Positions 2,704 through 32,149 of a stretch of DNA of 64,000 nt are shown here, piece by piece. A program made the translations under genes and the position numbers. Under the pieces are notes generated by a model, which did no database searches, was not told the origin of the DNA, and worked only from the letters and a program-made list of their open reading frames with translations. Numbering within the stretch: the stretch's first letter is position 1; the number at the start of each line of letters is the position of its first letter. The stretch comes from Amphiscolops sp. MND2022 (taxonomy: Eukaryota), in contig OZ076415.1 in assembly GCA_964187785.1 (NCBI GenBank), positions 46,376,001 to 46,440,000 on the forward strand, read 5' to 3'.

Positions 2704-2961
2704 GATTTTAATTCGCACGTTTGACTACGTTGTCGTAAATTTCGTGTATTGGTTCGTGCACTTCATATGATTTGAAACGGAACATCATATGGTTTCAAGC
2801 GTTTCCATGCATTGATCCATAGGCTTTTAAGTATATTACCGATGAGATGAATTGTCAACTTTTATTAAATTATTTTTGTATTGCAATTTCAGACTGAGTT
2901 TCATAAGAAATCAGATTCCTGGTAACCTCACAATTGATGAAATGTAAAATTATCTTTCCAG

Positions 2962-5760: not shown

Positions 5761-5775
5761 CGAGAGGAGGATTAG

Positions 5776-7100: not shown

Positions 7101-7287
7101 GCCTGTAACAGTAACAGTAAAGTTTAATTGTACAAGATACACATTGTCTTTCCACCTGCTATGGTTTTATTGTTTTCAATTGTAGGATTTGTGTATTCCA
7201 TTTTATTTGGACGCAATTGTTCCTTCTTTTTATACGGGTGATCATTACATGCTTGCATGTGTAGTATGATCATTCGAGTTGAAGTGT

Positions 7288-7995: not shown

Positions 7996-8132
7996 GTCGC
8001 ATTTTCCTTTAAAGGACTACTTTAAAACCAGAAACTACTAAACTACTCAGGCCAAGACCGGCCAATGCAAAATTAGTGCCAAAGATCCCGCTTTCTTTTT
8101 TATTTTTTTTGAACGTAACCTACCAAACCCGA
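7996..8132 (+). repeat. Left part of the interspersed repeat that served as the insertion target of the giant element
   Basis: ...gtaacctaccaaacccga joins cgagaccaagggg... at 31772, restoring the motif aaacc(c)ggacgagact seen intact near 42615. Left boundary approximate. Confidence 0.55.
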
Positions 8133-9625
8133 TGTCGTAACCATCATCATCACTTTGTTCGAAGTCTACTAAATTGTCTCTACGGTGATAACTCTGGTTA
8201 CTGGAAGTTGCAATTAATTTGGGAAAGTTCTCCCCTAAGTCCTGGACCTGTTGGCAAAATTTAGTTTAATGCCGTCCATGTGACTCAAGGTCCGAATTTT
8301 GAGTCATTTGGATATTTTTATCCGGATGCCGTCCATCTGACCGAAGCTCCCATTTTGTATTTTTGGCCTCCCTATTGCTTGTAATCACATTTTCAATGCT
8401 CGGCAATACCTTTTCCTCGATTGCTGAGTTAATAACCTCCAAAATATGAGAATTTAAGTCTGATTTCATTTCCTCTATTTTCCTTGACATTTGTGATGAA
8501 ATTTCCGAGTTCATCATTCTACTAGTTTCTACAGTAATTTCACTGTTTTCACTCAAATTAGTGTTTAAGAGTGATCTATAGTTTCCCTCATTTTGGTCTA
8601 AATCCTGTTGCCGTCTTCTTGACTCAGGTTCAATTTCTATCTGATCAACGGCTTCTTGCTCTCTAATTTCACTATTGGTGTAATTCCCTAACATAACGTC
8701 TAAGTTTTCTATATCAGACAACACGTCTGATTGCCTTGAGCGCTTCTCTCTAGCTTTTTGCTTTCTTGTCGAAGGCATTTCAATGAGAGATTTTGAGGTT
8801 TCAACAATGAATTGAATAATGTGGTATCGTGAACAATATGGTTGTATTCGTATTTTTGAATGAATCATCATTACTGGAAATTTGCATATATATAGTAGCT
8901 ACAGCATGACACTCGATATTTAGGGTGTCATGTACCAAAAATAACCGTGATGTCATTGCTTAGAATAGCGCCGTCTTGAGTGTTACTAAAAATAGCAAAC
9001 AGGGTCAAATGAACCTTACGTCACTTGCTTTAAGATCTATAAATAGAAGCAACAATGAACAAAATATAATATTTACATGACAACAATAACATTTCATGCA
9101 ATTAGGACGATATTGAGCTAAATGGACCGATGGTCCAAGTGGCGGCAGTAAAAAACTAGTAACTGCGATTTGATTGGTTAATGCTGATTTGGACAACGCG
9201 TCAACTTGACGGCAGCGCTGTACCAGTTGAACGCGTTTCCTACTTTTTTGACAGTTTACATTAGCACTTGCTTAGAAATATTTCTAATTCAATAACAACG
9301 ACAAACAATTAGCTACACGTTAGTTTACTAGTACACAACAGGTGGAATATAATATAAATAGTACCATGTACTGTTAAATAAAAATATATGCACAAGTAAA
9401 CACTTGCCGTCAAGTTGACCTTAGGTCAACAATTGTAGTTAAAATGCTCATAAAGATCAGATTATGCATCATATCATTAAAATATCAAAATATATAACTA
9501 AATGAAATTGTTTCTGAGTTTTTTAAGTCCCTTTTATATGGGTAGTACTCCGGGTAAGGGCACTGTCATATCACTTTCTGGAGTGATCTGGTATGTCAGG
9601 CCGTCGCAGGCGGCCGCCTGCGACA
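8133..9625 (-). repeat. 3' LTR (1493 bp), includes a copy of the gag leader ORF (8266-8871)
   Basis: Direct repeat of 30347-31766. The + strand begins TGTCGTAACC and ends GCCTGCGACA. Confidence 0.92.
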
Positions 9626-10470
9626 CTCCCCTAGGTACCAGAATGAAGGACACAGCCTTCATTCCCGCTTCGAAAGCGTTGCGCTTGGCAAGTCTTGACT
9701 CGTATGACCCGCCCGGGAAGTATGTCTTTTCTAAATAGCCAAGGGTGATCTCTTCCTTAATCGCCGGGTAATCTTTTCCGCAGACAACACAACCTGTGTA
9801 ACAAACTTCGTTCGACTGTCCGCAGTTCCCGCTGATGCTGATGCCTAAACCATTGATGTGTGGATTGTCGGACCAGCTTGCTTCAAGCGGTATCCCTGCC
9901 CCTTGCCGGCTGTTGTAAGTTGGCCTTTGGTCAAGCAGGGTGGAGACAGCGGAGATTCAGGGACAGTATCCAATCTGCTGCATTGGGCTATAGGGTAGTC
10001 ACTAACAGATTGGCCATAGTATGAGGGTGGAGGATTCCCCACAAACCAATCAATGAGGGAGTTGGAAGGTTCTGAAAATGTACTCACTGAGTCGATGGGC
10101 TCACTCGGTGGGATATTGAGGTCATTCAGACATTCGGTCAATTCCGTTGTCATCGCTCTCCCCGCTACTAGTTGTGGTGGGAACGTGTCATTGTAATTGT
10201 AACAAGCCAAGACCTGAATCTCGTCGTCGTCGCTCACTACGTCTTTTGTATCGTCTGTTGAAGTCATGGAGTCAATGTCCATATCTTCGTCGGAAGATTG
10301 GTAGCTAAGATCGACCAACGATCTAGGTCGAAGCTCACAGTTGAATTGCAGAGCCATTTCAAAGTAATAACGTTCAAGAAGCAGTTTTTTCGCAATTGTG
10401 TCAAGCAAGGTATTAAGCAACTGAATTTAGAAAATTTGGAAGACATGATTTTCTGCCGTCTTCCTGACAT
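9534..10470 (-). CDS. Unknown cargo ORF (frameshifted), acidic/Ser-Pro-rich with a Cys cluster, extending into the 3' LTR
   Basis: ORF 9845-10420 continues after a frameshift as LGISISGNCGQSNEVCYTGCVVCGKDY...VPRGVSQAAACDG...LPGVLPI* (stop 9534-9536). A possible start MSGRRQK near 10470 would need a further frameshift. Confidence 0.5.
9626..9632 (-). promoter_or_regulatory. Polypurine tract
   Basis: Minus-strand AGGGGAG immediately before the TGTCG start of the 3' LTR. Confidence 0.75.
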
Positions 10471-10986
10471 CGGGTCTAACCCCAATTTTGGCGGGGGTTG
10501 GTCGCGGGGTTTTCTCCCGAATCATAGTTTCAACTTTTCCTTTTTAGGTTTCGATTAAGAGCAGAGTCTCAAATAATTTTCGAGCAATTATTCTGCGAAG
10601 CTTGGTAATAGCCCCCTCAAGTTGTTTTACTTCATTCTTCAAAGGCGCCACTTGACAGTTTAAGTGTTGTCTCTCTTAATTCTCCGTCAACAAATAACTT
10701 GAAAGACCGTTGGTCCTTCAGACGGCAGTAATGATGATAACCAATCAGATGACGCTGGATTGGTCGGTAAAATATGGCAAGTAATTTTATGAATGTGAAA
10801 TGAAATAAGTAATTTGATGTGTTTTTTAGGGGAAGGAAACGAAATGAAACAAAAAATAGGAAAGTCCATAAATATTTCACTGGCAAATTCCATACCATGT
10901 ACTTGGAATAAGGGAGCTTGAATAAAGCAAAAGGAGGAGATGGTAATATGAAAGAAAGTCTTACATGTAGCCACGACATCCAAATG

Positions 10987-11009
10987 ATAATAATAATAAT
11001 AATAATAAT
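10987..11009 (+). repeat. (AAT)n microsatellite
   Basis: About seven AAT units read directly. Confidence 0.9.
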
Positions 11010-11206
11010 GATAACGGGAGGCCCTTTGTAAGATTCTTGAAAACAATGAAACTGCCTTTGTCTAGGAATGAAACAATTTAGAGGCTGCATGTAGAAATCG
11101 ATATCCAAGAAGCCTAGAAAGTCATTATATTGTCTTCATTCAAGTCGCGATGCATAGCTATGAAGCGTAGCAACAACTTTGCTTTACCTCAAATGTTTCT
11201 ATTTCA

Positions 11207-11222
11207 GATTGGTATGACGTCA
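11207..11222. promoter_or_regulatory. Candidate internal promoter motifs (CCAAT box next to a CRE-like TGACGTCA)
   Basis: GATTGG at 11207-11212 and TGACGTCA at 11215-11222. A second CCAAT/TGACG/ATTGG cluster lies near 10741-10765, upstream of the minus-strand 3' ORF. Confidence 0.3.
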
Positions 11223-11645
11223 CACGCAGTGGCGTTTAATTACCTCAATTTGAGACAATAAGAGGCTGTATGTACAAAATTTATTATTACCAGAGAGCAC
11301 TGGTACCACGTGAAGAATTCAATGCTGTGGTATTTACTATTGGCTGAGCTTTTAGACGAGCTCAAGTTGAACTCTCGTGAACTTTTGTGAATGGATACGA
11401 GTTCACAAAGACTCAATAAAAGTACATATGATTGGACAACGAATTGAAACAACAAGAGCGTCTTTGCTTTGCAATATTAATAATAGGAGTGTTTATGTAA
11501 ATTGCATTATTATTAGAGGGTCTTTGTTGGCTTTTACTACTGTCAAAATTTAGACTTCAGTGACTGAAAAACGTACAGGGACGACATTGTATTACTTAAA
11601 CGTCCACGAACTAGCAAGCTAGTACAAAATCAAAACTAAATGAAA

Positions 11646-12011
11646 CTATTTAGTAGCCAATTGAAGGGCAGAGCGGAACTTTTGGTACACTTTATCCACC
11701 ACAGTCTCAGTATCTCGATTATTCAAGTTTTCTTTCTTCGCCATTTCTCGCACTGTATGCTTTCCAACCATTATTCGTTGTTCAACAATCATGCGGCAGA
11801 CTCTTTCAATGTGTTTTTGGAGCGTTTTATGCGGCTTCGAAAAATTCAGCATGCTTTTTTCGATCTTTTTCCACATTTCTTCTTTATTTCGGCGCAGTGA
11901 ACGCGAACTTTGCGGCAGATTTTCAACCAGTTTTTTATTGGAAGGGCGGTATTCGTCTGTTTCCTGGGAAGGCTGTGGATTCTCGCTGTCGACTATAACA
12001 AATTGAACCAT
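11646..12011 (-). CDS. 121-aa ORF directly after the recombinase; possible C-terminal part or separate small helical protein
   Basis: Plausible charged helical sequence. The ATG lies 4 nt after a strong acceptor (TTTGCCTGTAG at 12016). Confidence 0.4.
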   Translation of the reverse strand: MVQFVIVDSENPQPSQETDEYRPSNKKLVENLPQSSRSLRRNKEEMWKKIEKSMLNFSKPHKTLQKHIERVCRMIVEQRIMVGKHTVREMAKKENLNNRDTETVVDKVYQKFRSALQLATK

Positions 12012-13913
12012 TTAGCTACAGGCAAACGATATGTTGAAATTAAAAAAACAAAAAAGCATGGGAAAGCACAATATTATTTCAAATTTACCTTCAGTTTGAG
12101 ATTCACTAATAGCGGCATCTGGAGCTTCTATGGCTTCCCCAGGAACTACAGGCTCGTCTTCAGACGGTGAGAGCTCATTTGATGGCCAATGAGAACAACC
12201 CTGGGCATCTTGTGGCTCTTTCAACTGCTTTAGATATGCAGGATCTTCCAAAATTTTTTCTTGCAGAGACAAAATTCGCTCAATTTCATCATCGGTGGGG
12301 GGCTTGGAGTAAAATTTCTTCCTTGTAGCTTCTGAATGGCCACTGTTAGCCTCATAGGCGGCTCGTAAGTCCTCTGTAACGAACTTGTCCTTCTCCAGCA
12401 TTGTGTCCCAGTGCTTTCTAATTGAATTTGGACCGAAAGTATATGGCTTCAAGTCAAAATTCCGTCCTATAATCGTGTTGATTGTAGTCGCCTGAGCTGT
12501 CAATTTACCATCGTCTGCGTTGGGAAACGCCAGAATAGCAACCCGACCATGCATTTGCTCATAAATTTCGTGGAAAGTTGTCAACCACTCCAAATTTTCC
12601 TCCGACAGTTTGCAGAAATTGGTCATAATATGGCCGGTTTTATGTTTGTGGGTGCGGCGGATGTCTGTATTGACGGTATCCAACTCCTCCTTTGTCATGT
12701 TTAGCAAACCACCAGCTCTACAATTAGTGCGCGCATGAATGAGGAAGAAAATTGATGAAATTATTTCACTCATTGTCAAAGTACGGGGGCCTTCTCCTTG
12801 TTTTCGTCGCTTACAGGGAAGCTCTCGTGATTCTCGAAATTGACAAAGGGCCTCTTGCAATAACTCGCGAACACCTTTTACTGCCTTTGAAAGCACCTCA
12901 ACGGGAGGGATTTGATTGTAGCGCTCTTCCCGCTTCTCAAACGCTTCCTGTGTTGCTGGTTTACGAATGGAACGCATGTATGTTTCAATCTGAGTCTCCC
13001 AGCTGTTGAAAGGAATTTTTTGCGACTTGTCACCAGTGCTTTTGAGGAAAAACAAAAAGTTTTTCAAATCGAATAATAACTTCTTCATGGACACCAAAGA
13101 GTACTGTTTTTGGGCCTGATACATTGTCAAAATCCTTGGCAAGTCAGAACAGTTTCGCATGTTGCCACAATTCGAATAGACGTGCGTTAGAAAGGCTTCA
13201 ACGTACCCAGGCACAGGTGCATCTTGCAGGTCGATTTTGAACTGGGCGAAATCTTTCATAATTCCAAAGATTTTTGAAGAGACCCGACCCTCTCCTTTGA
13301 TGAATGCACTCACCTCTGGTGGAAAAGTATCATATCCGGCTTTGTCATTGACTTTTATGATGTTGTGGCCAGGATTTTGTTGCAAATGTCGTGTTTTGTT
13401 GGCAGTTCTTAGCATGCAATCGACGCACTCCCAAACTCGCCCAGCAGCAATTCGGGTGTGGTGGTAGCTCAGAATGAACCTTTTGACGCGGTCTTCGCAA
13501 TGATGGACCTTGTTCAGATGTTGATACATCTTTTTGACTTCTTTTCGGCAGATTACACATTTTACCAGGTCGGCTTTTGGGCGTTTTCCGTACGATTTTG
13601 GGCTACAAATCCTTCGTTTACGAAGCAATCCTGGGTCGACTTCTTTTGGAGGCGGGGACTCAGTTTCGCATTGGCCCTGCGACAAGCCCAGAGGCTGTGA
13701 GTGCTGAACTAAACTGAAATTCGCCATTTCTAAAGACGGATCTTGGAGCAGTTCATCGACAATGCCTGATGTACGGGGCGTTAAAGTCAGATTTTGGCTG
13801 AAAATGGGCTCAGCGCTGTTATCAATGGCATCTGAGGGAGCCTTGGAAGTCGTCGGAGTAGCAAGATTAATGTTTGAGACTTCTTCAGTAACTTTTTGAC
13901 TTCTCGTCTTCAT
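12012..13913 (-). CDS. Tyrosine recombinase (phage-integrase fold, Crypton-like) with two N-terminal C2H2-type zinc motifs
   Basis: Catalytic signature in the correct order: TNC-R-AGGLLNM, H-K-TG, NSI-R-K (HxxR position), SG-H-SEAT, RKKF-Y. Also CVIC-x7-HLNKVH and CVDC-x8-HLQQNPGH. 633 aa uninterrupted. Confidence 0.85.
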   Translation of the reverse strand: MKTRSQKVTEEVSNINLATPTTSKAPSDAIDNSAEPIFSQNLTLTPRTSGIVDELLQDPSLEMANFSLVQHSQPLGLSQGQCETESPPPKEVDPGLLRKRRICSPKSYGKRPKADLVKCVICRKEVKKMYQHLNKVHHCEDRVKRFILSYHHTRIAAGRVWECVDCMLRTANKTRHLQQNPGHNIIKVNDKAGYDTFPPEVSAFIKGEGRVSSKIFGIMKDFAQFKIDLQDAPVPGYVEAFLTHVYSNCGNMRNCSDLPRILTMYQAQKQYSLVSMKKLLFDLKNFLFFLKSTGDKSQKIPFNSWETQIETYMRSIRKPATQEAFEKREERYNQIPPVEVLSKAVKGVRELLQEALCQFRESRELPCKRRKQGEGPRTLTMSEIISSIFFLIHARTNCRAGGLLNMTKEELDTVNTDIRRTHKHKTGHIMTNFCKLSEENLEWLTTFHEIYEQMHGRVAILAFPNADDGKLTAQATTINTIIGRNFDLKPYTFGPNSIRKHWDTMLEKDKFVTEDLRAAYEANSGHSEATRKKFYSKPPTDDEIERILSLQEKILEDPAYLKQLKEPQDAQGCSHWPSNELSPSEDEPVVPGEAIEAPDAAISESQTEGKFEIILCFPMLFCFFNFNISFACS

Positions 13914-14362
13914 TTTAATTGAAATTGAACAAAGACGCTCTTGTTGTAAATTATCAAATTTTCTGAAATTCTTGATTTCGAATGTAGTTTTTTAAAATTT
14001 AGATTAAGAAAACAAGCAACTATTCAACAGATTAGGAAAACCAAATGTGTCTAGTTTACATAACTGTTATTTATATTACCAATTACTAGATGAAATGTTA
14101 CGTAACAGCTGCCGAACGAGTGCAGAAAGCTTCCGGTGGAAGCGACAGCCACGCTCGCTGTGGTAATTTTCCGAGACGAAAATTTCTCGGAATTACGTCA
14201 TAAGGCAGCTTGCGTTCAACTCGGTTTTGGAATGGTTTTCCGAGATGGTACCACATCTATATGGTCTCACTTACCTTTGAAAGTTGGGCGGAGGAGCGGT
14301 GTTGTAACCCGTGTTTTGAGAGGCGAGAGCGCCAATGTCTCGCAGGAGCGCTTATGTAGTCT

Positions 14363-14497
14363 NNNNNNNNNNNNNNNNNNNNNNNNNNNNNNNNNNNNNN
14401 NNNNNNNNNNNNNNNNNNNNNNNNNNNNNNNNNNNNNNNNNNNNNNNNNNNNNNNNNNNNNNNNNNNNNNNNNNNNNNNNNNNNNNNNNNNNNNNNN
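14363..14497. other. Assembly gap
   Basis: Run of 135 N. Confidence 1.
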
Positions 14498-15165
14498 TTG
14501 ATGGTGAAAATGAGTAACTAGTGAATAGCGTAGTATTTGAGTGGAGAAAACGAAGTGGAGGTTTATTTGATAGTAACACACTTCATGCCGTCGAGATGAC
14601 TCATAGTCCGATGTATTGGTAGTAATTTAATTATACTTGATTGTGTACCAGTAGAGCTTTGCTGTCTGAGTGACTTTATGTTCATCTCACGCGCACAACT
14701 GTTATTAGTACTGATCAGAGTATACTATTTGTTTCTTCAAGCAGTATCACTTGGGCTATTTGTTGTACTTTGTATCCCAAATAGTCTCTCTGACCATGAG
14801 TTTCAAATTTATCCGTGATCTTCAACGGTAATTTCCTGGTTTTCCCTTTCATTGTCAATTTGATTGACTGAAAACTCAGCAACAAATTACCCGTATCCAA
14901 TTTCAACTGCACAGACAACCTTTAAGCAATTTGCGAGAAATTGTGCGAAACAACCTCAATTATTTCTGGACTATTGGGCCGCTAAAACAACCTCCTGTTC
15001 GAGACTTCAACTGAAATTGTATCGTCTTCTCTTTGTACAACAACTGAGCCACATCAATTTTGCTGCGCAACTATGGCAACAGCATCAGGTTGGATCTTTT
15101 GAATGTGCTAAAATTAGGCTTGATCAGGGCTCTAACTTTAACTAAGTTACTTCCTCCATCGTGAA

Positions 15166-19597: not shown

Positions 19598-19760
19598 GGT
19601 TTCTTGATGTTGAGTTTGGTGTTTTGTTTAATTTCTGTTTAGTTGTCATGTTGTATCGTTAGTCATTAGTTTTGTTGTGGATTACACAGTCAGACTGGAC
19701 CCTAATAATGGTTTGATTGACACAATCGAAACAATGGGCCAGGTAATTTACTTATTCTGA

Positions 19761-21554: not shown

Positions 21555-21860
21555 TCAATCTTCGTGTCTAACGTGTCAATGAAGTAAGAAAAAAAAGGCT
21601 CCTAGAAGACAACAACGATCGCCGTTGGCTTTACAGAGGCATTTCTCGAAGCATCTACAGGGTCGAAAAACACACTACCCGAGACGAGCCTAGGGCCATT
21701 AGTGGAATTCGCTCCATCTTGAAGAACCGAGTACTTCGGAAAGCCTTCTGCCCCCAGATCGACAAACAAGGTCACCCCCGAACATACGAGTGCCCTCCAG
21801 GTGCCCGCGCTAAGTCACGTAAGCTGAACTTGTCTTCAGGTAAGCGACTTTCCTGTTTAA

Positions 21861-21986
21861 GCTACTACGGTACTTCTTCAAGTTCCTCGTAGCTATCGAC
21901 CATTCCGCTACTACGGTACTTCCTTAAGTTCCTCGTAGCTATCGCCTGATTCTGCTACAACGGTACTTTCTTAAGTTCCTCGTAGC
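21861..21986 (+). repeat. Three 46-47-bp tandem units in the leader of the nested element
   Basis: Units gctactacggtactt...aagttcctcgtagc start at 21861, 21907 and 21954. Confidence 0.9.
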
Positions 21987-22022
21987 AATTGTCTATGCGC
22001 TGTATTCCCTCTTCTTACGCCC

Positions 22023-25000
22023 ATGAAGATCAAACCACCCGACTTGCCATCAAATCCTTCTCCCGAGAAACGGAAATGGCGGAAGAAATGTTTCGAGGAC
22101 GGCTTACGCATCAATGGCACAACCGAAGATGCTGACAAATTAGTTTTTCTTCGTTCATTTGTCGGCTCCGACTATTTCACTCTCCTCGAAAGCTCTGCAA
22201 CGTTTGCAGACGCCCTGAGAACATTGGACAGACAGTTTCTGAAGCCCACAAGAGTGCTCTTTGCCCGTCATCAAATGCTCAGTGCCAGTCAAAAGGACGA
22301 CGAATCTATCGTACAATTTCCAGGAAGGCTGAAAAGTCTTGCTGAAGACTGCGAATGCACCAGCTTGACCGTCCAAGCACATAAAGACTATCTAGTACGA
22401 GACGCTTTAATATCAGGGCTCAGGTCTGACGACATTCGGGCAAGACTATTGGAACTGGAAGTCTCCAAGGCCGACATTGATAGCTGCATATCGCTTGCTT
22501 GTGCTATCGAACTATCCAGTGACTTTTCCAAATCTTTCAGAAGTGCCGAATCTTCAACTGTAGCAGCAACCAAGCCGTTCTCCCAGACAACTCGACGGCA
22601 ACCTGATCGGCCCGGCAACTCCGCTACCCAACAGGTTTCGAACAAGCCTCGTCCACGCTGTCAGTTCTGCGGTCTAAAACAGCATCCACGCTCAAAGTGC
22701 CCAGCCAAAAAGGACACTTGTCACAAATGCTCGAAAGCAGGACACTGGGCTTCGGTATGTAGGTCGACCGCTGCTGTCTTACAACAGTCATCTGATGATG
22801 AACCCGAGACTGCCGCCGTTTTGTGCAGTACTGGCATATCCCCTGCCACTCTGAATGTCAGCCTCAAATTTGCCGGAAGCAATGAACAAGTTCAAGCAAT
22901 GATTGATACCGGGTCCCCGGGCTCCTTTATCAGCGCCTCAACAGCTGCCAAATATGGCCTGAATATCCGCGCTAAGCGCAAGGTCACTGCCTTGGCAAAT
23001 AGCGACTCTCTGATTACGTCAGGCACCGCTAAAGCTAAAATTGAGGTAAACCAAAAGACCTACCAAGTTCTCTTCACTGTCGCAAAACACCTCGTTGCGG
23101 ATGTTATTCTCGGGCTTGACGTTCTCCGACAACATCACTCTGTGAGACTGGAATTAGGCGGTGATCGACCAGAGACGGTTATATCTGCCGGGCTCAAGGA
23201 ATTGGAGTTCCCGGCGATGAAAATTGCCCCTCCGACCATACTTTCCAAAACAGTTTATAGTGCCAAACCGATTGCTACAAAATCGCGTCGTCACAAACCG
23301 CAAGACGTCGCCTTCATGGAGTCAGAAGTTAACCGAATGCTCGCTGAAGGCATAATCCAAGTTTCCACGTCTCCCTGGCGGGCTCAAGCCTTTGTCGTTA
23401 GGGACGGACCCAAGCCACGGATGGTGATCGACTATTCTCAGACAATTAATTGTCATACGTCCAAAGACGCCTTCCCCTTTCCAAATATGCAAGACCTGCT
23501 TGACAAAGCAGCCGCGAACACTACTTTTTCGAAAATCGATTTGAAGTCTGCGTGTCATCAAATCCCCCTCCATCGCAAGGACATGTCATTCACCGCGTTT
23601 GAAGTGAACGGACGACTTTTTGAGTTCACAAGACTTTCCTTTGGCGTCACGAACGCTGTAGCCGCATTTCAACGAGAAATGACAGCCTTTGTACGCCGGC
23701 ACAACCTGAAGCGAACGCACCCATATCTTGACGATGTGATCATCGGAGGCAGATCCGAGGAGGAACACCAAGAAAATCTGAAGAACTTCCTGAAAGCGGC
23801 CGAGATTAAGGGTCTGACACTGAACAAAGCTAAATGCGTTTTTGGCTGTAAGACAGTACCAATGCTCGGTCACATTGTGGGAGCTGGATCCAAACGCCCC
23901 GATCCGAGCCGAATCAAGACACTGATGGATTTCCCTATCACCGAAAACTCGTCACAGTTGAAACGCCTTCTTGGGTTCTTTGCGTACAACGCAAAGTGGA
24001 TTGCAGACTACTCAAATAAGGTTGCTCCCCTGCTCGCAGCACAGAAACAACTGGCCTTTCCGCTCAACCAAGCTTCTCGGCTAGCTATCGCAACTCTCAA
24101 GAAAGAAGTTGCCTCTGCCGTACTCTGGCTGCCCCGGGCAAACGAGCCTCTCGTTCTCCAAACCGATGCATCCGGGACCGGTATCGGAGCGACACTCACT
24201 CAAAACGACAAACTTGTCCGTTTCTTCTCGAGAACTCTTAAACATAGCGAAATGGCGTACTCGGTGGTTGAACGGGAAGTTATGGCTATCTTGGAAGGCT
24301 TCCGCCGTTTCTCAGACCTGTTACGGACGTCACGGGTTCTAGTTCGCACCGATCAAAAGGCCCTCTCCTTCATATTTGGACCCAACTCTTCCAGAGTGAA
24401 GAATGACAAACTGATTCGCTGGCGCCTGGAACTTTCGGAATACAACTTCGAGATAAGCTACCAGAGAGGTTGTCAGAACGTGTTAGCTGACGCCTTGTCT
24501 CGATTAGCGTTCCTACAGCCCAGCTGTAAAACCCTACACGAGACACTTGCGCATCCAGGAGTGACCCGACTGTACGAATACATTCAAAGACACAAAGTCC
24601 CAATATCTTTAGATGAGGCGAAAAAGGTTACCGAAAACTGCAAAACGTGCGCTCTATGGAAACCGTGCTTTTTGCGACCCCCCGGAAGCGATCTTATTCG
24701 ATCCTCCAAACCTTGGGAGCGACTATCAATCGACATTGTTGGCCCCAAACCAATAACTAGAAACAAAAACCAATACCTTCTCACAGTGGTGGATGAGTTT
24801 AGTAGGTTTCCCTTCGCCTTCCCTCTCCGGAACATCACGTCTAGTAGCGTCATCAAGTGTCTTTCAACGCTTTTCGCCATCTTCGGAACACCTGGGTTCA
24901 TTCACTCTGACCGGGGCACACAGTTCGTCTCATCGGAATTCCAAAACTTCTGCCGCCAAAATGGAGTTTCGACCTCCAAAACTACGCCCTACCACCCCCA

Positions 25001-25637
25001 GGGCAATGGCCAAAACGAGCGCTACAACGGAATTGTGTGGAAAGCAGTTCAGTGCCTGCTACACTCCACAAACCGCCCACTAACTGACTGGGAAAGTGTC
25101 CTACCATCAGCGCTCTCGTCGATTCGGACACTTATCAATACCGTCACCAAGGAGAGCCCTCATGATCGCTTCTTCTGTTTCAAACGCGGCGAGCCGCTGA
25201 TCCGTCCCTCCAGTAGCGCACCTTGGCTCAGAGCAGACGCTCCCGCGTACCTCCGGAAATTTGTAAGGGCGAAAGACCAAGCTCCCGTTGTGCCTGTACA
25301 GATATCCGAAGTCATCTCCCCTCACCTTGCACGAGTCTCCTTTGGCGATGGGCGAGCTGACACTGTTTCTACAAGTGACCTCTCTCGACGACCGCCGGAT
25401 ATTGACAATGAAGGAACGACCTCACAACCAGGAGGTCAATACGAAGACAAGGAGACCGATGTAGACATCAGAACATCGGGTCACGACATCAGAACCGAAG
25501 GTGAACCACGTGAATCTGTGGAACCAATAAAGGAATCTCAATTCAGTCCGGACTCTCCCGCTCCCACCTTGCGACGCTCGGCTAGGAACAGGAAACCTCC
25601 TACATACCTAAGGGACTTTGTGTCGGCTATGAACTAG
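22023..25637 (+). CDS. gag-pol: Single-ORF Gag-Pol polyprotein (1204 aa)
   Basis: CHKCSKAGHWASVC zinc knuckle, MIDTGS protease, YLDD RT, TDAS RNase H, HETLAH/CKTC, DIVGP, SDRGTQF and NGQNER integrase motifs. No stops. Confidence 0.95.
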   Translation: MKIKPPDLPSNPSPEKRKWRKKCFEDGLRINGTTEDADKLVFLRSFVGSDYFTLLESSATFADALRTLDRQFLKPTRVLFARHQMLSASQKDDESIVQFPGRLKSLAEDCECTSLTVQAHKDYLVRDALISGLRSDDIRARLLELEVSKADIDSCISLACAIELSSDFSKSFRSAESSTVAATKPFSQTTRRQPDRPGNSATQQVSNKPRPRCQFCGLKQHPRSKCPAKKDTCHKCSKAGHWASVCRSTAAVLQQSSDDEPETAAVLCSTGISPATLNVSLKFAGSNEQVQAMIDTGSPGSFISASTAAKYGLNIRAKRKVTALANSDSLITSGTAKAKIEVNQKTYQVLFTVAKHLVADVILGLDVLRQHHSVRLELGGDRPETVISAGLKELEFPAMKIAPPTILSKTVYSAKPIATKSRRHKPQDVAFMESEVNRMLAEGIIQVSTSPWRAQAFVVRDGPKPRMVIDYSQTINCHTSKDAFPFPNMQDLLDKAAANTTFSKIDLKSACHQIPLHRKDMSFTAFEVNGRLFEFTRLSFGVTNAVAAFQREMTAFVRRHNLKRTHPYLDDVIIGGRSEEEHQENLKNFLKAAEIKGLTLNKAKCVFGCKTVPMLGHIVGAGSKRPDPSRIKTLMDFPITENSSQLKRLLGFFAYNAKWIADYSNKVAPLLAAQKQLAFPLNQASRLAIATLKKEVASAVLWLPRANEPLVLQTDASGTGIGATLTQNDKLVRFFSRTLKHSEMAYSVVEREVMAILEGFRRFSDLLRTSRVLVRTDQKALSFIFGPNSSRVKNDKLIRWRLELSEYNFEISYQRGCQNVLADALSRLAFLQPSCKTLHETLAHPGVTRLYEYIQRHKVPISLDEAKKVTENCKTCALWKPCFLRPPGSDLIRSSKPWERLSIDIVGPKPITRNKNQYLLTVVDEFSRFPFAFPLRNITSSSVIKCLSTLFAIFGTPGFIHSDRGTQFVSSEFQNFCRQNGVSTSKTTPYHPQGNGQNERYNGIVWKAVQCLLHSTNRPLTDWESVLPSALSSIRTLINTVTKESPHDRFFCFKRGEPLIRPSSSAPWLRADAPAYLRKFVRAKDQAPVVPVQISEVISPHLARVSFGDGRADTVSTSDLSRRPPDIDNEGTTSQPGGQYEDKETDVDIRTSGHDIRTEGEPRESVEPIKESQFSPDSPAPTLRRSARNRKPPTYLRDFVSAMN

Positions 25638-25659
25638 AGACTTTCGAAGCGGGAAGGAG

Positions 25660-25785
25660 TGTTATGAATGTAATATATATATGTAGTTATTAATACTGTT
25701 ATATAATGTCGTTGTGTTATTTATGTTAACCTAATTGTTGTATGTATACTTCATATGAATGCTTATCGAATAGAAACTTCCTGCA
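25660..25785 (+). repeat. Short 3' LTR (~126 bp) of the nested Gypsy
   Basis: Begins TG directly after the PPT. AT-rich, with AATAGA near the end, ending in CA at the host junction. Confidence 0.65.
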
Positions 25786-25841
25786 AGTGGATCTTGCTGT
25801 AAGATAGTTTCAGAGTGGATCTTGCTGTAAGATAGTTTCAG
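25786..25841 (+). repeat. 28-bp tandem duplication of host pol at the insertion junction
   Basis: agtggatcttgctgtaagatagtttcag occurs at 25786-25813 and 25814-25841. Confidence 0.95.
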
Positions 25842-28800
25842 AGTATTCTTCCTTTTGTAATTTGAGGCGTAGTTGTTGTAATGTGATGTCATTGTTTTGT
25901 TCAATAGCCATGGTGATTGGTTTCGCTAGTTTTTGCAAGGTTGGAGTTTGGGTTTGGGTACTTTTATGTATACTGAGTTTGTCCAATGAAATGTCAGGTA
26001 GTTGATTTGTAGGATTTGACCTGGCCTCCTTTTTTTGTTGCCATAATTGTTCCTCGGTTTCTTCGTCGTCGTCTGGATAGAATATCTGGTCCTCTTCGGT
26101 TACTCCCGCTGATTGGACATTGAGTTCGATGGGTGTGGTTGGAATGTCCTCTCGTATGCGGAGGACGAGTTTTTCTTTAGGACAGCTTTCAAGACGAGAC
26201 AGATAATCTGCAGCGGTGTTGTTTTTCCCTGGTATATGGGCAATCGTGAAGCTGAACTGAATAACGTAGTCACACGCGTTCCATAGCGTTGGTGGAATGA
26301 TATTTGTCTGAAAAAAGCGAGTGACTGATTTGTTGTCTGTTAGAATGATCACCGGTGCCGGACCCCCAAAAGTTGTGTCCAAATTCCTTGAAGGGAAAAA
26401 ATATCGCTAAGAATTCTTTCGCATATATGGACATTTTCAGTTGGGCGGGACTAAAGGTCTTGGATCCATATGCTACTGGTGCAAAGGCTTTTCGCGTTGA
26501 ACTATATTTTTCCATTGGATCATCCTCGATGATAACTGCATAACCTGCTGCCGAAAAACTAGCATCAGTCATCAGGGCTCTCTGTACGTTGGGCAGAGGT
26601 TGTTTGAGTGCGAGTTCACAACATCGGTCAAGAGCTTTGTTGATTTCGGTGAATTGTTCTAACAGTTCGGGAGTCACCATGACTTTGGCATCATTTTTCA
26701 ACAGTTTAAAGAATGGTGCAAGTTTTTCAGAGAGCCTTGGGATGTAATTGCGGTAGTAGTTTAGAAAACCCAAATATCGTTGAAGTGCTTTTTTGGATTT
26801 TGGAAATTTCGTTTTATCCAGAAAGTTTTGGACCCTGGGTCGTTGTGGCCGCACTTCCTCAGGAGTGATGGTACGTCCCAGGAAGTCAATTTCTTTGGCT
26901 CCGAAGTGACATTTATGCATCGTTAATTTGAGACTCGCGGTCCTGATGCACTCGAAGGTTGCTCGCAAGTTGTTGATGAATTGAGTGACACTGTTGGCGG
27001 CAATACCAATGTCATCGACATACTGAGCACATTGGTCCGCTTTAATCACTTTATCCAGGTATTCACGCATAAAACTTGGGAAAGCTGATAGGGCTCGACT
27101 TGAACCTTGCGCAAGTCGGCGATGGGCAAAGGTTCTGCTGGCGAAATTGAACGCCAACATCTCTATGGACCTTTGGTCAGCCATCTGCAGACAGTGGTAT
27201 GCCTGAGAACAGTCGAGCTTGCAAAATAATCGCTTGCCTGCCATGTGTTGCGCTGCATCCGTTAATGTACTGACAGGATGGTTGTTGTTGATATAATCGT
27301 CGGAAATCAAATTGTTGATTTTCCGGAGTTCGACCAAAAAACGTAATTTGCCATTATGTTTTTTCTGAGCAAAAATGGGACTTGCATATTTGGAAAACGG
27401 AAGCGTTGTTATGATCCCATAGCGGTGGAGTAGCGCTAATTCTACAAGAATGTCCTCATTGAGGTTGATAGGGGTAGGTAAGCTTTGACTATAGGCAGGA
27501 GAGTCGTCTTTAGGGGTCAATGTGACCTTGAAGTCCTCGTTCATACCTATATCAAAGCGGTGCCTTGCAAAAATGTCGTGAAATTCGACAAGTAATTCTT
27601 CGATTTGGGCAATTTCAGCTGAATTTTGCGTCGAGTCAGTCCAGTCAAAGTTAGCAAGAAACTGTTTCCTAGACTCAAGGTTATCCTGAGGGTTCAGTTT
27701 TTCTAAGTCCTGGAGGTTTCGTAATTCCCTTAGGATTCTTTGTTGTATGGGTGTATGGGTTTGAGGGTCCCCTGGTTCCTCTGGAGTCGGGAACCAATAG
27801 TTCTCACTGTCTTCGCTAGTTTTCGGGGATTTATTGAGGCTACTGGCATAGTATGCAGCATTTTCCGGATTATCTTTCAAAAAGTGCCAGGTGGTCACCG
27901 GGTCGATGGGTTTGACATATTTCAATTGTTCTGGTGTGAGAACAGAGAAATTGGCAATGTGCGAACCTCTTTTGATGGTATAAGGCTGGTCAGTGAAATT
28001 GTTGACATGGATCGATACCTGACCTTGGGTCAGTGTGACGAGACCAGCGCAGAAGGTTATGTCACCATCTTCTGCAAGGTCATTGCTCGGTTGAAGAATT
28101 CCAATGACTTTTGTGTCGTCATACAGTTGTGAGGACATGGAGACCATATGTCTGTCGTTGGGGGGAATAGTTATATCCTCCCGTGCACAGATAGGTTCCA
28201 TGACATTGGTATACTTGTGATCAGCTGTTTTTAATTGCATGGAAAAGAATGGGAAGTTTAGGACTCCCTGTCGCATATCCAATATGGTATTGTTCCGTTG
28301 CAGGAACGAGAGACCAATTAGCGGACTTGTAAGTTTTTCCATAACAATGAAGATCTCGTAGAAATCGATGTCCCCGGCCTCGAATTTGAGATCAACGGTG
28401 CTCTTTGGATTCTCCAGCTGTCCGTTAGCTACCATAATTTGGAAGTTGGGTGGTGGGCTCTCTTTAATTATCGACTTGTGGGCTAGTAATCGGATTTTAC
28501 GTAGATCAGCTTCTGGGATCGCGCTAGATAGGACTCCCGTGTCTACAAGGCCATCTAATGTTAGTTCGCCAAGATCCATTGGGAAGTAGAGCATGCGTCG
28601 TTTATATTTGAGCCCCAAGATAATTGTCAACGGTACATAGTCAGGTTCACCATTTCGTGAGATCAGCGTGTTCACATAGCGCTCTTCCACTGTTGTCGTC
28701 AATGTGACCAAAGGTCCATTGTGTGGAAGTTCTTCTGTGATTTCCCCCTGGATTGCTGAATGGGTAATAATCCGCACATTTTGCCAGGGGTCAACAGAGG

Positions 28801-29197
28801 CCAAGGATAATTTTGTGCTCAGCAGCTGATCAATTTGGGGTTGATCAGGTTCGATATCTGCAGTGTTTTTGGTGAAGTCCTTGTAGAAGTGTAGATGATG
28901 TTGGTTGTAGATTTGAACGTCCCAATAGGGGTCGAAACTGAAGTCTGGATCGGGATAATAGGGGTTATAGTTATCTATGAGGGGAAGAGTGCGAAAAGTC
29001 GTAGTGTTAGAGTGCTGTCTGTTGGACTGAAGGTCCAAATTGTGTAAATTGGTAGGAATTTGTTTCACCTGCTGCTGCCAGTCAGCTGATGAATTTTCTT
29101 TAATGGAGGAGTAAAATTCTGTATAATAGATAGTAGGAGGGTCAGATATTGTATATTGTCTGACGCGTAGTTTTTCATTAATCTGGAGTCGTGGCAA
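25786..29197 (-). pseudogene. pol: pol of the giant element: protease, RT, RNase H (frameshifted)
   Basis: LVDTG protease, KLDCSQAY and QYVDD RT, TDASFSAAG and KEFLAI RNase H, HIPGKNNTAADYLSR. Confidence 0.95.
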
Positions 29198-29258
29198 ATC
29201 TAGTTTTTTGAAATTTTTAGAATGGAAGTAGTGGGTTTGTTATTGGAGTCATCTTGAC

Positions 29259-30992
29259 TCATGGGAGTTTCCGCGGTTTTGGAATTATCCAATTTGAGGT
29301 TTTTGGGCTTGAGGTGGGCTCCAGCGCCTTTCCAACACCGTTCCGCCGGGTGATTCGTTTTGTCGCAAGTTGGACATTTGGGATATTCTTTCCTCGTATC
29401 CTGCCCACCATTGCGCTTTTGTTCCTCCTTTCTCTTGAGTTTTCGACAGTCATCTTTGACATGCCCCGGTTTTTTGCAATAGTTACAAGTGATCTTCGGG
29501 TCAATGCCAGATGAAAGGAGGCCAGTTGCCGGTCGTGTTGCTGTGGGGCAGTGGACATTGTGGGGACATGAATGTCGTCACCTTCCTCAAGTCCATTCAA
29601 TTCTAATTCTCGTTCGAGATGTGTGACAATCTCTTCATACGTTGCGTCTTCGAGTCGCGCCATATTGACGTAACGTTTCAGTTTGGGTGGTAGTTTAGCA
29701 TAAAGCAAACTGTCGATCATTGCTTGGGCATGTTCCCCGAAAGCTTTTTCAGGACCTTGGTTGAGTTCTTCAAGGAAATCAGGCAATTTCATAGTATTCG
29801 GATCAATTACCAGTTTGTGCCATTTGTGTTTGGCGGTTGTCTGAGACTCGGGTTTGACATATTTCCTACGGAAGACTGCTAGTATGTCCTCTAGGGTTTG
29901 TCTGTTGGCTGAATTGATGTTGCGAAAGGTCTGTAGCGAGCTTTTGCGCAACAGTGAGTGAAAATGAGTGATTTTCATCGTTTCCGTCATGTCCGGTTGC
30001 ATCTTTATCATCGTGTGAAAAAGATCTTCGAACAGTTCGAACTTTTCAGATTTACCGTCAAACGTCAGTGTGGCCCTACTGACTGGGCGTAACATCAGAG
30101 TTTGTGATGGCTGTTTGTTGTTCATCCCCATAATGACATCTGCAAGACAGTTAATGGGGTCAACTGGAGGTTCGTGGGGCGTCTCCTGATTGTTAATTTG
30201 ATTTGGATTTTGCTGGGCTGGGAGGGTTGTTTCCAGCGTATCGTCATTGCTAGGATTTTGAAGAGGAATGGTGTTTCGGGATTGCATGGGCCATCCGGTC
30301 AGGAATTCTGGGACCAAATGTGGGGTAAGGTTGGCTCCTGTCACCATGTCGTAACCATCATCATCACTTTGTTCGAAAGCTACTAAATTCTCCCTACGGT
30401 GATTACTCTGGTTACTGGAAGTTGCAATTAATTTGGGAAAGTTCTCACCTAAGTCCTGGACCTGTTGGCAAAATTTAGTTTTATGCCGTCCATGTGACTC
30501 AAGGTCCGAATTTTGAGTCATTTGGATATTTCTATCCGGATGCCGTCCATCTGACCGAAGGTCCCATTTTGTATTTTTGGCCTCCCTATTGCTTGTAATC
30601 ACATTTTCAATGTTCGGCAATATCTTTTCCTCGATTGCTGAGTTAATAACCTCCAAAATATGAGAATTTAGGTCTGATTTCATTTCTTCTATTTTCCTTG
30701 ACATTTGTGATGAAATTTCCGAGTTTATCATTCTACTAGTTTCTACAGTAATTTCACTGTTTTCACTCAAATTAGTGTTTAAGAGTGATCTATAGTTTCC
30801 CTCATTTTGGTCTAAATCCTGTTGCCGTCTCCTTGACTCAGGGTCAATTTCTATCTGATCAACGGCTTCTTGCTCTCTAATTTCACTATTGGTGTAATTC
30901 CCTAACATAACGTCTAAGTTTTCTATATCAGACAACACGCCTGATTGCCTTGAGCGCTTCTCTCTAGCTTTTTGCTTTCTTGTCGAAGGCAT
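29259..30992 (-). CDS. gag: gag of the giant element; likely ATG at 30992 inside the 5' LTR (ORF open from 31085)
   Basis: Capsid-like TFDGKSEKFELFEDLF...FHSLLR...RKYVKPES. Upstream of pol. C-terminal zinc-knuckle region appears frameshifted. Confidence 0.85.
   Translation of the reverse strand: MPSTRKQKAREKRSRQSGVLSDIENLDVMLGNYTNSEIREQEAVDQIEIDPESRRRQQDLDQNEGNYRSLLNTNLSENSEITVETSRMINSEISSQMSRKIEEMKSDLNSHILEVINSAIEEKILPNIENVITSNREAKNTKWDLRSDGRHPDRNIQMTQNSDLESHGRHKTKFCQQVQDLGENFPKLIATSSNQSNHRRENLVAFEQSDDDGYDMVTGANLTPHLVPEFLTGWPMQSRNTIPLQNPSNDDTLETTLPAQQNPNQINNQETPHEPPVDPINCLADVIMGMNNKQPSQTLMLRPVSRATLTFDGKSEKFELFEDLFHTMIKMQPDMTETMKITHFHSLLRKSSLQTFRNINSANRQTLEDILAVFRRKYVKPESQTTAKHKWHKLVIDPNTMKLPDFLEELNQGPEKAFGEHAQAMIDSLLYAKLPPKLKRYVNMARLEDATYEEIVTHLERELELNGLEEGDDIHVPTMSTAPQQHDRQLASFHLALTRRSLVTIAKNRGMSKMTVENSRERRNKSAMVGRIRGKNIPNVQLATKRITRRNGVGKALEPTSSPKTSNWIIPKPRKLP
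30333..30346 (-). promoter_or_regulatory. Primer-binding site
   Basis: TGGTGACAGGAGCC immediately follows the LTR end ...GGTTACGACA. TGG complements a tRNA CCA end. The priming tRNA was not identified. Confidence 0.8.
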
Positions 30993-31766
30993 TTCAATGA
31001 GAGATTTTGAGGTTTCAACAATGATTTGAATAATGTGGTATCGTGAACAATATGGTTGTATTCGTATTTTTGAATGAATCATCATTACTGGAAATTCGCA
31101 TTTATATAGTAGCTACAGCATGACACTCGATATTTAGGGTGTTATGTACCAAAAATTCCCGTGGTGTCATTGCTTAGAATAGCGCCGTCTTGAGTGTTAC
31201 TAAAAATAGCAAAAAGGGTCAAATGAACCGTACGTCACTTGCTTTATGATCTATAAATAGAAGCAACAATGAACAATATATAATATTTACATGACAACAA
31301 TAACATTTCATGCAATTAGAACGATATTGAGCTAAATGGACCGATGGTCCAAGTGGCGGCAGTAAAATACTAGTAACTGCGATTGGATTGGCTAATGTTG
31401 ATTTGGACAACGCGTCAACTTGACGGCAGCGCTGTACCAGTTGAACGCGTTTCCTACTTTATTGACAGTTTACATTAGCTCAGAATTATTTCTAATTCAA
31501 TAACAACGACAAACAATTAGCTACACGTTAGTTTACTAGTACACAACAGGTGGAATATAATATAAATAGTACCATGTATTGTTAAATAACAATGTATGCA
31601 CAAGTAAACACTTGCCGTCAAGTTGACCTTAGGTCAACAATTGTAATTAAATTGCTCATAATGATCAGATTATGCATCATATCAGTAAAATATCAAAATA
31701 TATATTTGAATGAAATTGTTTCTGAGTGTTTTAAGTCCCTTTTATATGGGTAGTACGCCTGCGACA
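30347..31766 (-). repeat. 5' LTR (1420 bp) with a ~67-bp deletion near its outer end
   Basis: Direct repeat of 8133-9625. The sequence equivalent to 9549-9615 is absent. Confidence 0.92.
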
Positions 31767-32148
31767 CCCGACGAGACCAAGGGGTCCCCCTTTTCAAAGT
31801 TTTTTCGGTACTGTGCGACTTTTTTGAAAATATTTTAAGATCTCAAAAGGTCCCCTTCGAGTTTTTCGATAGTTTGCAACAGAAAGTATGTTATTAAATC
31901 CCAAAATGTCCCCCTTTTTTCCGGCGCTATGCAACATTTTCTGAAGTTTTTTTCACAAAAAGCTTCTTTTGTTCCCAGTTGGGGAAAAATTGGTTTCCGA
32001 GTCTTATCGAGCTTGAAAGGCACCCTTTGCGTGTCTTGAAACTGTTTTTTGAGGTTTTCATAAATGCGTCCTGGGCATGTTTTAAAAACGTTTTTTGAGC
32101 GCCGTTACTTAGATTTAGCGCCGACATTAGAAATTCTCGTCTTGATCT
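31767..32148 (+). repeat. Right part of the interrupted interspersed repeat
   Basis: Body motif ttttcggtactgtgcgact and terminal tagcgccgac...ctcgtcttg, as at 42610-42909. Confidence 0.7.
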
Positions 32149-32149
32149 T

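Follow-up and report, generated by a model that had tools for sequence, protein, structure and literature searches.

A Ty3/Gypsy-type retrotransposon family with an antisense five-exon gene, and the transposons nested in one of its copies

Structure and family layout of the retrotransposon

The stretch of 64,000 nucleotides analysed here (Amphiscolops sp. MND2022, contig OZ076415.1, positions 46,376,001 to 46,440,000; hereafter the window) includes, at positions 8133-31766, a long terminal repeat (LTR) retrotransposon whose coding strand is the minus strand, and which had been described in an earlier note, made from the sequence alone, as a cargo-carrying Gypsy element with three extra genes between pol and the 3' LTR. 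Self-comparison of the window revealed a single pair of long direct repeats (8132-9548 versus 30346-31756; 96.3 % identity over 1417 bp), so that the LTRs of this copy have diverged by 3.7 %. The direct orientation of the LTRs, their TG...CA ends and a target-site duplication within the range of 4-6 bp, here CCCGA on both sides, are as in Ty3/Gypsy elements, and the single insertion with LTRs and CCCGA duplication proposed in the earlier note was thus borne out. The same applies to the distance of about 10.1 kb between the end of pol (~19764) and the 3' LTR, and to the presence of a 4.2-kb nested Gypsy element on the plus strand (21552-25786). For the primer-binding site and polypurine tract it had named, a TGG-initiated 14-mer and a 7-nt purine run, respectively, occur in the appropriate places as candidates, the latter call being weak. 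The following features of the retrotransposon could be distinguished:

8128-8132, no strand: left target-site duplication CCCGA (bases inspected; same pentamer at 31767-31771)
8133-9625, minus strand: 3' LTR, 1493 bp, TG...CA (96.3 % identical to its partner; end read directly)
9626-9640, minus strand: polypurine-tract-like stretch adjoining the 3' LTR (purine run AGGGGAG next to the LTR)
9845-10420, minus strand: sense open reading frame (ORF) 3, the product of which is small, acidic and rich in Ser and Pro (55 % identity to the ORF at the corresponding position of the relative L008)
19764-29197, minus strand: pol (Pfam; piecewise comparison with the L008 and L009 pol proteins)
about 20930-21214, minus strand: integrase (IN) core of pol (Pfam)
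about 26354-26671, minus strand: RNase H of pol (Pfam)
about 26867-27364, minus strand: reverse transcriptase (RT) of pol (Pfam)
about 27947-28192, minus strand: dUTPase of pol (Pfam)
about 28295-28558, minus strand: protease (PR) of pol (Pfam)
29259-30332, minus strand: gag, an open frame continuing upstream into the LTR (608-aa ORF, weak DUF1759 match in Pfam; 83 % identical to the L009 gag)
30333-30346, minus strand: primer-binding-site-like 14-mer just inside the 5' LTR (read directly)
30347-31766, minus strand: 5' LTR, 1420 bp, TG...CA (repeat comparison and ends read)
31767-31771, no strand: right target-site duplication CCCGA (bases inspected)

On the sense strand, the layout of the family comprises the 5' LTR, gag, PR-dUTPase-RT-RNase H-IN, a 6.7-kb pol-to-LTR region and the 3' LTR. 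The pol-to-LTR region consists of an antisense five-exon gene, arranged tail-to-tail with pol, an (AAT)n microsatellite and the small sense ORF3. The order of the Pfam domains in pol (RVT_1, RT_RNaseH_2, RT_RNaseH, Integrase_H2C2, rve) is that of Ty3/Gypsy elements, and recurs in the relatives L008 and L009. In gag, by contrast, the weak match is to DUF1759, which is more usual in Bel/Pao elements, and any assignment of the window element to a clade is therefore provisional.

The window element spans 23,634 bp, from which 4,263 bp (the nested Gypsy and an adjoining duplication) and ~3,426 bp (a nested tyrosine-recombinase element) can be subtracted to leave ~15.9 kb. In L009, the distance from LTR start to LTR start is 14.45 kb, or ~15.9 kb once one LTR is added. 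As both calculations give the same figure, the base element is estimated at ~15.9 kb; the ~19.4 kb given in the earlier note still includes the second nested element. The interval 8133-31766 can thus with good confidence be considered one old, inactive copy of a ~15.9-kb Ty3/Gypsy-type LTR retrotransposon family that carries an antisense five-exon gene.

The window copy is dead, with both pol and the antisense gene broken. Protease, dUTPase, RT and RNase H are joined in one frame of 975 aa. In pol as a whole, the 4.2-kb insertion is accompanied by a minimum of three disruptions of the frame. The frames of gag and ORF3 are open. The latter, a 191-aa ORF, had been considered as noise, an option that was dropped given its conservation among the relatives: it is also found in L005, L007 and L009 (275 aa in L009), with a ratio of non-synonymous to synonymous differences (pN/pS) of 0.14-0.61, and has no Pfam match. 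Both ORF3 and the (AAT)n tract are standard parts of the retrotransposon family. No match to Rfam was obtained in the window.

The relatives compared for the antisense gene are L005 to L009 and L011, and the gene occupies the same place and orientation in every one of them. The family thereby agrees with the aORF-3R class of antisense-ORF LTR retrotransposons, defined by a conserved ORF antisense to gag-pol, between pol and the 3' LTR, in most copies (PMC7264820). One of the relatives, L009, was picked through its pol protein (at least 90 % identical to the window pol), blind to cargo. Its LTR pair is 99.1 % identical, and it contains no nested element and an unoccupied (ATT)22 tract. In this copy, gag, PR-dUTPase-RT, RNase H and IN are encoded on one strand and the last, second and first antisense exons on the other, followed by (ATT)22 and ORF3. 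The same layout is seen in L008, the antisense exon 1 of which is 53 % identical to that of L007 (used as search query), while L006 and L007 show the same 3' half as the window element. Even in the most distant antisense homologue, L011 (34 % identity), the gene again lies opposite an RT-RNase H-IN gene.

The relative L005 has the same left flank, LTR, nested Gypsy and broken frames as the window, at 98.4-99.3 % identity. Because the flank and the nested Gypsy are shared and the offset is similar in a contig of similar size and coverage, L005 most likely represents the other haplotype of the window locus. The possibility that it is a second insertion was dropped on account of the same shared flank, nested Gypsy and offset.

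With regard to the LTRs of the window copy, 67 extra bp (9549-9615) occur near the inner end of the 3' LTR and are missing from the 5' LTR. They end in a palindrome made from the LTR's own terminal sequence. This extra stretch is probably shared with L005, which aligns across it without a break.

The antisense five-exon gene

The structure of the antisense gene, which lies on the plus strand of the window, was derived from DNA alignments of the copies and from the protein families, as follows:

15166-19597, plus strand: antisense five-exon gene for a C2H2-finger protein, a pseudogene in the window
15166-17378, plus strand: exon 1
17472-17947, plus strand: exon 2
18017-18151, plus strand: exon 3
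18223-18304, plus strand: exon 4
18390-19597, plus strand: exon 5

A single open frame of 645 aa in L007 is the counterpart of the first two antisense ORFs of the window. Homologues of this frame (exon 1) form 45 clusters with 32-88 % identity (about 470 gene calls), and homologues of the 424-aa ORF (last exon) form 70 clusters (about 490 gene calls), with every homologue found in both families coming from the same source assembly. The 424-aa ORF had been listed as a separate gene of unknown nature, which was rejected, as it constitutes the last exon of the antisense gene. The exon-1 proteins all end a few residues past a conserved motif that overlies the GT donor. DNA alignments of the window, L006, L007, L008 and L009 copies place four short introns at homologous positions, with GT-AG ends and pyrimidine-rich acceptors. 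Mapping by script located GT and AG at all mapped sites in 5/5 copies, with intron lengths of 63-95 nt, and the intron interiors are poorly conserved between the five copies. In L008, the antisense frame is open across all four exon junctions into the last exon.

Comparison of the antisense gene between copies yielded 0.13-0.29 non-synonymous and 0.75-0.96 synonymous differences per site (pN/pS 0.14-0.36), synonymous sites being saturated in this comparison. Judged by these substitution patterns, the antisense gene is under purifying selection. In the window, exon 1 carries one frameshift and one in-frame stop and exon 2 at least two frameshifts, while exons 3-5 are open. The gene is also broken in the allelic L005.

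Several observations weigh against a functional antisense gene as a regular part of the family. It is fully open in 0/5 copies examined in detail, though that of L008 is open through all junctions, and no conserved poly(A) hexamer was found after the last antisense exon. Its promoter, splicing and function are all deduced from sequence. Furthermore, the gag-pol of L009 and the window are 90 % identical, compared to only 70-83 % in patches of the antisense region. The LTRs of these two copies are likewise only 70-83 % identical, and synonymous sites are unsaturated in gag-pol and saturated in the antisense gene. Either the antisense module evolves faster or the copies are recombinant mosaics. 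The contrast between gag-pol on the one hand and the antisense gene and LTR on the other suggests that recombination may have taken place between lineages of the family.

Some of these observations also bear on the alternative that the antisense gene is a functionless passenger, a piece of another element or of a host gene that landed once and has since been hitch-hiking and decaying. The presence of at least one break in 5/5 copies examined closely, the lack of a recognisable domain besides one finger and the faster divergence of the gene relative to pol all agree with such an origin. This alternative is nevertheless considered improbable: between 57 and 78 % of the residues are kept despite saturated synonymous sites, with a pN/pS (0.14-0.36) in the range of ORF3 and not far from that of pol, 8/8 splice sites are retained across five copies despite differences of 20-30 % between these, and the gene persists to 32-36 % protein identity, still opposite pol. 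A gene that is an established part of the retrotransposon family is thus the preferred reading.

The N-terminus of the antisense protein is largely of low complexity. Conserved blocks come next, then a stretch rich in Lys and Arg and a single C2H2-type finger, and the C-terminal part is all-helical. A sub-threshold match to a generic C2H2 family (PF25420) was obtained for 18/20 family members, with a best E value of 1.4e-4. The finger has CxxC...H...H spacing, which by eye only, on reading of the alignment, is compatible with a BED finger. The hAT-like origin that the earlier note had assigned to this zinc-finger gene found no backing in Pfam, PDB sequence or fold searches. No BED, DDE, DUF4371-type or hAT dimerisation signal was observed in Pfam on any exon piece (E up to 10), nor any hAT, BED or DDE signal among 48 aligned members of the antisense families (E up to 1), and PDB sequence profile searches with the antisense exons were empty. 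The AF2 model of the last exon is all-helical (pLDDT 53) and had no significant Foldseek match against PDB and BFVD. An RNase-H-like DDE domain combined with a hAT dimerisation domain, as expected in a hAT protein, was thus found neither with Pfam and PDB profiles nor in the fold search of the last exon. Similarly, scanning of positions 9500-20000 recovered no terminal inverted repeats around the antisense gene, so that the termini of its own and the 8-bp target duplication expected of a hAT element are lacking there. A short motif spanning the junction of exons 1 and 2 may resemble the first strands of hAT transposases, and is taken as a lead, not a result. In none of these analyses was the antisense gene connected with hAT or another DNA transposon.

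Elements nested in and around the retrotransposon

The (AAT)n microsatellite of the window copy is occupied by a second mobile element, which is made up as follows:

10983-11014, no strand: (AAT)n microsatellite, target of the recombinase transposon (TRF)
10987-14497, minus strand: nested type-A Crypton-like transposon, which measures 3.46 kb in its sister copies and has its 5' end under the N gap 14363-14497
11646-12011, minus strand: second small ORF of the nested transposon, 121 aa, directly after the recombinase gene in every sister copy
12012-13913, minus strand: predicted tyrosine-recombinase gene, 633 aa, open, with an N-terminal Cys/His region and a two-domain recombinase fold

The tyrosine recombinase recognised in the earlier note was upheld by the fold of its predicted structure. 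The AlphaFold model of the 633-aa protein has a mean pLDDT of 76, with values above 90 over most of residues 110-570, and its top 11 Foldseek matches in PDB are XerA, XerH, Cre and TelA (probability 0.89-1.00), with noise below these. In the alignment of 34 proteins on which this model was built, R399, H424-K425-T426-G427, R499-K500-x-W502, T530 and Y535 are near-invariant (invariant or at least 90 %). H526 does not belong to these near-invariant positions, being conserved only among the window recombinase, a close copy and a 31 %-identical paralogue. In their order and spacing, R, K, R, H526 and Y come close to the presumed catalytic set of Cre, and the first histidine of the usual HxxR box is presumably replaced by Asn in the window recombinase. 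In a word-indexed protein search, the recombinase matched nothing outside its own 54-member cluster, which stems entirely from one ENA assembly. An exhaustive HMMER search added 84 distant relatives with 21-37 % identity, from which the 34 aligned proteins were drawn. The Pfam family Phage_integrase (PF00589) was matched below threshold in 3/34 relatives (e.g. P0212, residues 47-197, E 4.3e-5). Neither the 633-aa ORF in Pfam and PDB sequence searches, nor the 121-aa ORF in Pfam, had a match. Two points count against the assignment: the Foldseek TM-scores are low (0.38-0.44 on target), with two domains matched at once, and Phage_integrase does not match the window recombinase itself. On the basis of the modelled fold, the 633-aa protein is nevertheless identified as a tyrosine recombinase.

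The unit encoding this enzyme is delimited by its sister copies. The loci L001, L002 and L003 share with the window only 10983/10987-14362, at 97.7-99.7 % identity, and have nothing else in common with it or among themselves. The shared unit in these loci is 3459 bp long and starts and ends in (ATT)n. It is missing from the allelic L005, where an uninterrupted (AAT)25 tract takes its place (57 bp compared to 11015-14497 in the window), as well as from L008 and L009, where the microsatellite is unoccupied. In L006, the same microsatellite is filled with a different, (ATA)n-flanked type-B unit of 3.49 kb in the opposite orientation, the 748-aa ORF of which is 31 % identical to the window recombinase, and the tract of L007 contains two non-coding (ATT)n-bounded units. 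In the window, the element is young, being 99.7 % identical to that of L002, and its gene is open. The recombinase element thus represents a later, independent and still polymorphic (heterozygous) insertion rather than cargo of the retrotransposon.

In addition, the two L007 units lie at 4369-6644 and 6689-9313, and one matches, at 99 % identity, the DNA adjoining the L002 recombinase element (6809-9534). Furthermore, in L001 (12904-16379 and 17654-19223) a type-A recombinase element is followed by type-B units stacked in (ATT)n. Such stacks suggest that non-autonomous partners exist and that individual tracts have been hit more than once.

The nested transposon, whose only ORFs are those of 633 and 121 aa, encodes a tyrosine recombinase, as attested by the Foldseek matches and the R, K, R and Y kept across the family, and has no Pfam RT, LTRs or terminal inverted repeats, which separates Cryptons from DIRS and Ngaro elements. 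It was inserted without target duplication at a sequence shared with the end of the element, a small duplication inside the repeat being possible. As it lacks RT, LTRs and inverted repeats and is bounded by its target repeat, the element behaves like a Crypton. The recombinase elements that home to (ATT)n can thus be counted as a new member, or a variant, among the Cryptons; they came to light as a by-product of the analysis and do not belong to the retrotransposon.

These results also bear on the interpretation put forward in the earlier note, that a Gypsy vehicle has captured a hAT-derived zinc-finger gene together with a Crypton-type recombinase and spreads both as one module. It can be said in its favour that all the genes lie between one LTR pair with a single target-site duplication, that the recombinase is real and that the CxxC...H...H layout of the finger resembles a BED finger on reading by eye. 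Against it stand the absence of the recombinase unit from L005, L008 and L009 and the occurrence of its 97.7-99.7 % identical copies in contexts without any Gypsy, the different recombinase element in opposite orientation in L006, and the lack, described above, of hAT, BED and DDE signals (Pfam with E up to 10, PDB sequence and fold searches) and of terminal inverted repeats around the antisense gene. As a whole this interpretation is highly unlikely, and for the recombinase part it is already refuted: termini of its own, here bounded by (ATT)n, and absence from sister copies, here L005, L008 and L009, are findings which the earlier note had itself named as contradicting cargo status. The joint capture of genes from two classes of DNA transposons does not hold, as the recombinase is separate and the antisense gene is without a link to DNA transposons, and in place of the three cargo genes there are a foreign transposon, an antisense gene of five exons and, overlooked in the earlier note, a small sense ORF. 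The idea of extra genes spreading as a fixed module survives for the antisense gene, found in every relative sampled, and fails for the recombinase, which is a separate transposon. An ordinary member of a retrotransposon family, with its own antisense gene and later insertions, is thus the reading that is retained.

The only run of N in the window (14363-14497) lies at the edge of the recombinase element, and the match to the sister recombinase elements ends exactly at the edge of the gap, which could be taken to mean that unrelated pieces were joined in the assembly and that the recombinase side and the antisense side do not belong to one element. To the left of the gap, the window is colinear with the three sister recombinase elements up to 76 bp short of their end, and from 14498 onwards it is colinear with L005 directly after the microsatellite of the latter. 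The missing 76 bp of the transposon and some repeat fit the estimated 135 bp of the gap. Furthermore, L005 is gap-free from the left flank through the 3' LTR, ORF3, (AAT)25 and the antisense gene to pol, and aligns to 4894-11014 and 14498-29570 of the window at 98.4-99.3 %. An assembly artefact is thus scarcely credible, and the two sides, colinear with the sister elements and with L005, respectively, are consistent with adjacency. No ORF crosses the gap, which falls in the non-coding end of the nested element.

The second insertion within the retrotransposon is the small Gypsy element, for which two features were recorded:

21552-25786, plus strand: nested small Gypsy, 5'-truncated, in which the 1204-aa PR-RT-RH-IN ORF is open and the 3' LTR (about 130-148 bp) is the sole LTR (Pfam; bounds from the uninterrupted L009)
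25787-25814, no strand: 28 bp of host sequence, duplicated in tandem at the edge of the nested Gypsy (comparison with L009)

This element sits in the integrase gene of the host retrotransposon and was inserted after integration of the host. Its family forms a cluster of 99 close gene calls, and includes a full copy (L010) of 4.7 kb with 148-bp LTRs, relative to which the nested copy is without its 5' LTR and ~350 bp of leader. Neither an LTR pair nor a target duplication was found around the insertion, the former because the copy is 5'-truncated, as seen against L010. A perfect 28-bp tandem duplication of host integrase sequence (25787-25842) adjoins the 3' end of the nested Gypsy. Its presence, without a target duplication, hints at an irregular insertion or repair event. 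Three tandem repeats of 46-47 bp occur at 21852-21996 in the nested-Gypsy leader, just upstream of the long ORF.

The whole retrotransposon is in turn inserted in the integrase gene of an older relative on the minus strand (7291-7882 and 32147-34925; about 43-46 % protein identity), the integrase of which is split, with residues 404-649 on the left and residues 16-364 on the right, where RT and gag are also located. As the element lies inside the integrase gene of this older relative, the locus is nested three deep. Elsewhere in the window, direct repeats of 151 bp (94.7 % identity; 55773-55923 and 61876-62026), 6.1 kb apart, bound a stretch with strongly negative GC skew, in which no ORF exceeds 273 aa and no similarity to the pol proteins tested was observed. 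The region 55773-62026 may represent another decayed LTR element. Dispersed and tandem repeat matches of 79-96 % also occur between 1-4935 and 39970-43450 of the window, including an internal tandem duplication at 2999-4392.

Proposed mechanism and comparison with known systems

By virtue of the antisense placement of the gene, its four short introns would never be spliced from the genomic RNA and would be copied faithfully at each retrotransposition. The gene would be transcribed from its own promoter within the pol-to-LTR region, and its product would most likely act in the nucleus on nucleic acid. As a factor encoded by the element, it may thereby regulate either the expression of the element or the control exerted by the host, in the manner of the antisense genes of the plant elements Grande and Retand. 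The Crypton-like element would probably integrate by a tyrosine-recombinase crossover between its own ATT tract and genomic (ATT)n, which would leave the element bounded by the repeat and make no target duplication. A more far-reaching proposal, which is put forward as tentative and somewhat doubtful, is that a spliced antisense gene has been made standard in a Gypsy lineage, in a probably animal genome, with four introns that survive reverse transcription, that its zinc-finger protein, without a detectable relative elsewhere, is a new kind of accessory factor needed by the element, and that the built-in (AAT)n tract receives a whole guild of tyrosine-recombinase transposons that home to microsatellites.

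LTR retrotransposons with additional antisense genes have been described mainly from plants. The family described here has the same layout with an unrelated and much larger intron-bearing gene, kept under selection in hundreds of copies, and thus offers a clean natural case for asking what role such genes play for the element, and how a gene with introns can travel on an element that is copied through RNA. The recombinase transposons provide a clear pair of filled and empty sites and two divergent enzymes that use the same simple repeat, which bears on target choice by Crypton-type elements. For annotation, it can be noted that a seemingly giant, cargo-laden element can be an ordinary family member with nested insertions. 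The oversized internal region is shared with the giant Gypsy elements Ogre of plants and Burro of planarians, unlike which the base element here is ~15.9 kb rather than 19-24 kb, with the extra length in the window contributed by two nested insertions.

With respect to target choice, Cryptons have been proposed to insert by crossover between a short stretch of their own sequence and a nearly identical target, in agreement with the insertions observed (PMC9977147). The nested element resembles these in that its one recombinase gene is accompanied by neither RT nor terminal inverted repeats, that its insertion made no target duplication and that its ends share a sequence with the target (PMC9977147). 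What is shared here is an entire (ATT)n microsatellite instead of a 5-bp motif, and the recombinase also has an N-terminal Cys/His region. Endogenous nimaviruses of crustaceans encode tyrosine recombinases with a C2H2 zinc-binding region that are linked to insertion at simple repeats (PMC10871703), and the enzyme here is similar, by description only, in being a predicted tyrosine recombinase with a Cys/His region that homes to a simple repeat. The nimavirus enzymes reside in giant viral genomes and target the telomere motif (TAACC)n (PMC10871703), in contrast to the 3.5-kb carrier and (ATT)n target here.

With respect to the retrotransposon, a dUTPase listed between PR and RT, and family-specific extra ORFs after pol, are described for the Juno, Vesta and TelKA elements of bdelloid rotifers (PMC5408684). 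The family described here shares both of these, likened by description only. The ORF3 types named there include a GDSL lipase, DEDDy exonuclease, env-like and transmembrane proteins, compared to the large antisense multi-exon gene here.

Further parallels are known from plants. In Grande, RIRE2, Retand and PvRetro13, antisense ORFs occur between pol and the 3' LTR in most copies, and some of their products are nuclear or predicted to bind DNA, their role being not known (PMC7264820; PMC11963269). As in the Tat-clade elements Retand, Grande (gene23) and RIRE2, conserved ORFs antisense to gag-pol are found in most copies of the family (PMC7264820; PMC11963269), and the predicted product may likewise be nuclear or bind nucleic acid. 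The pol-to-3'-LTR region is long and contains tandem repeats, as in Retand (2.9-6.6 kb, compared to about 6.7 kb here; PMC7264820; PMC11963269). The Transposase_28 domain (PF04195) of the Retand antisense ORF (PMC11963269) is absent here, with no such Pfam match in any member, and the protein is unrelated to those of the Tat-clade elements and has only one C2H2-type finger. Furthermore, the gene is about four times longer than the plant antisense genes and has four conserved spliceosomal introns, while introns are not mentioned for the plant antisense ORFs in PMC7264820 or PMC11963269. Set against the Tat-clade elements, pol here includes a dUTPase and gag is DUF1759-like. Antisense ORFs at this position are thus already known from the plant Retand and Grande elements, and what is new is a gene of this size, with four conserved introns and an unrelated protein product, and its combination with a dUTPase and ORF3.

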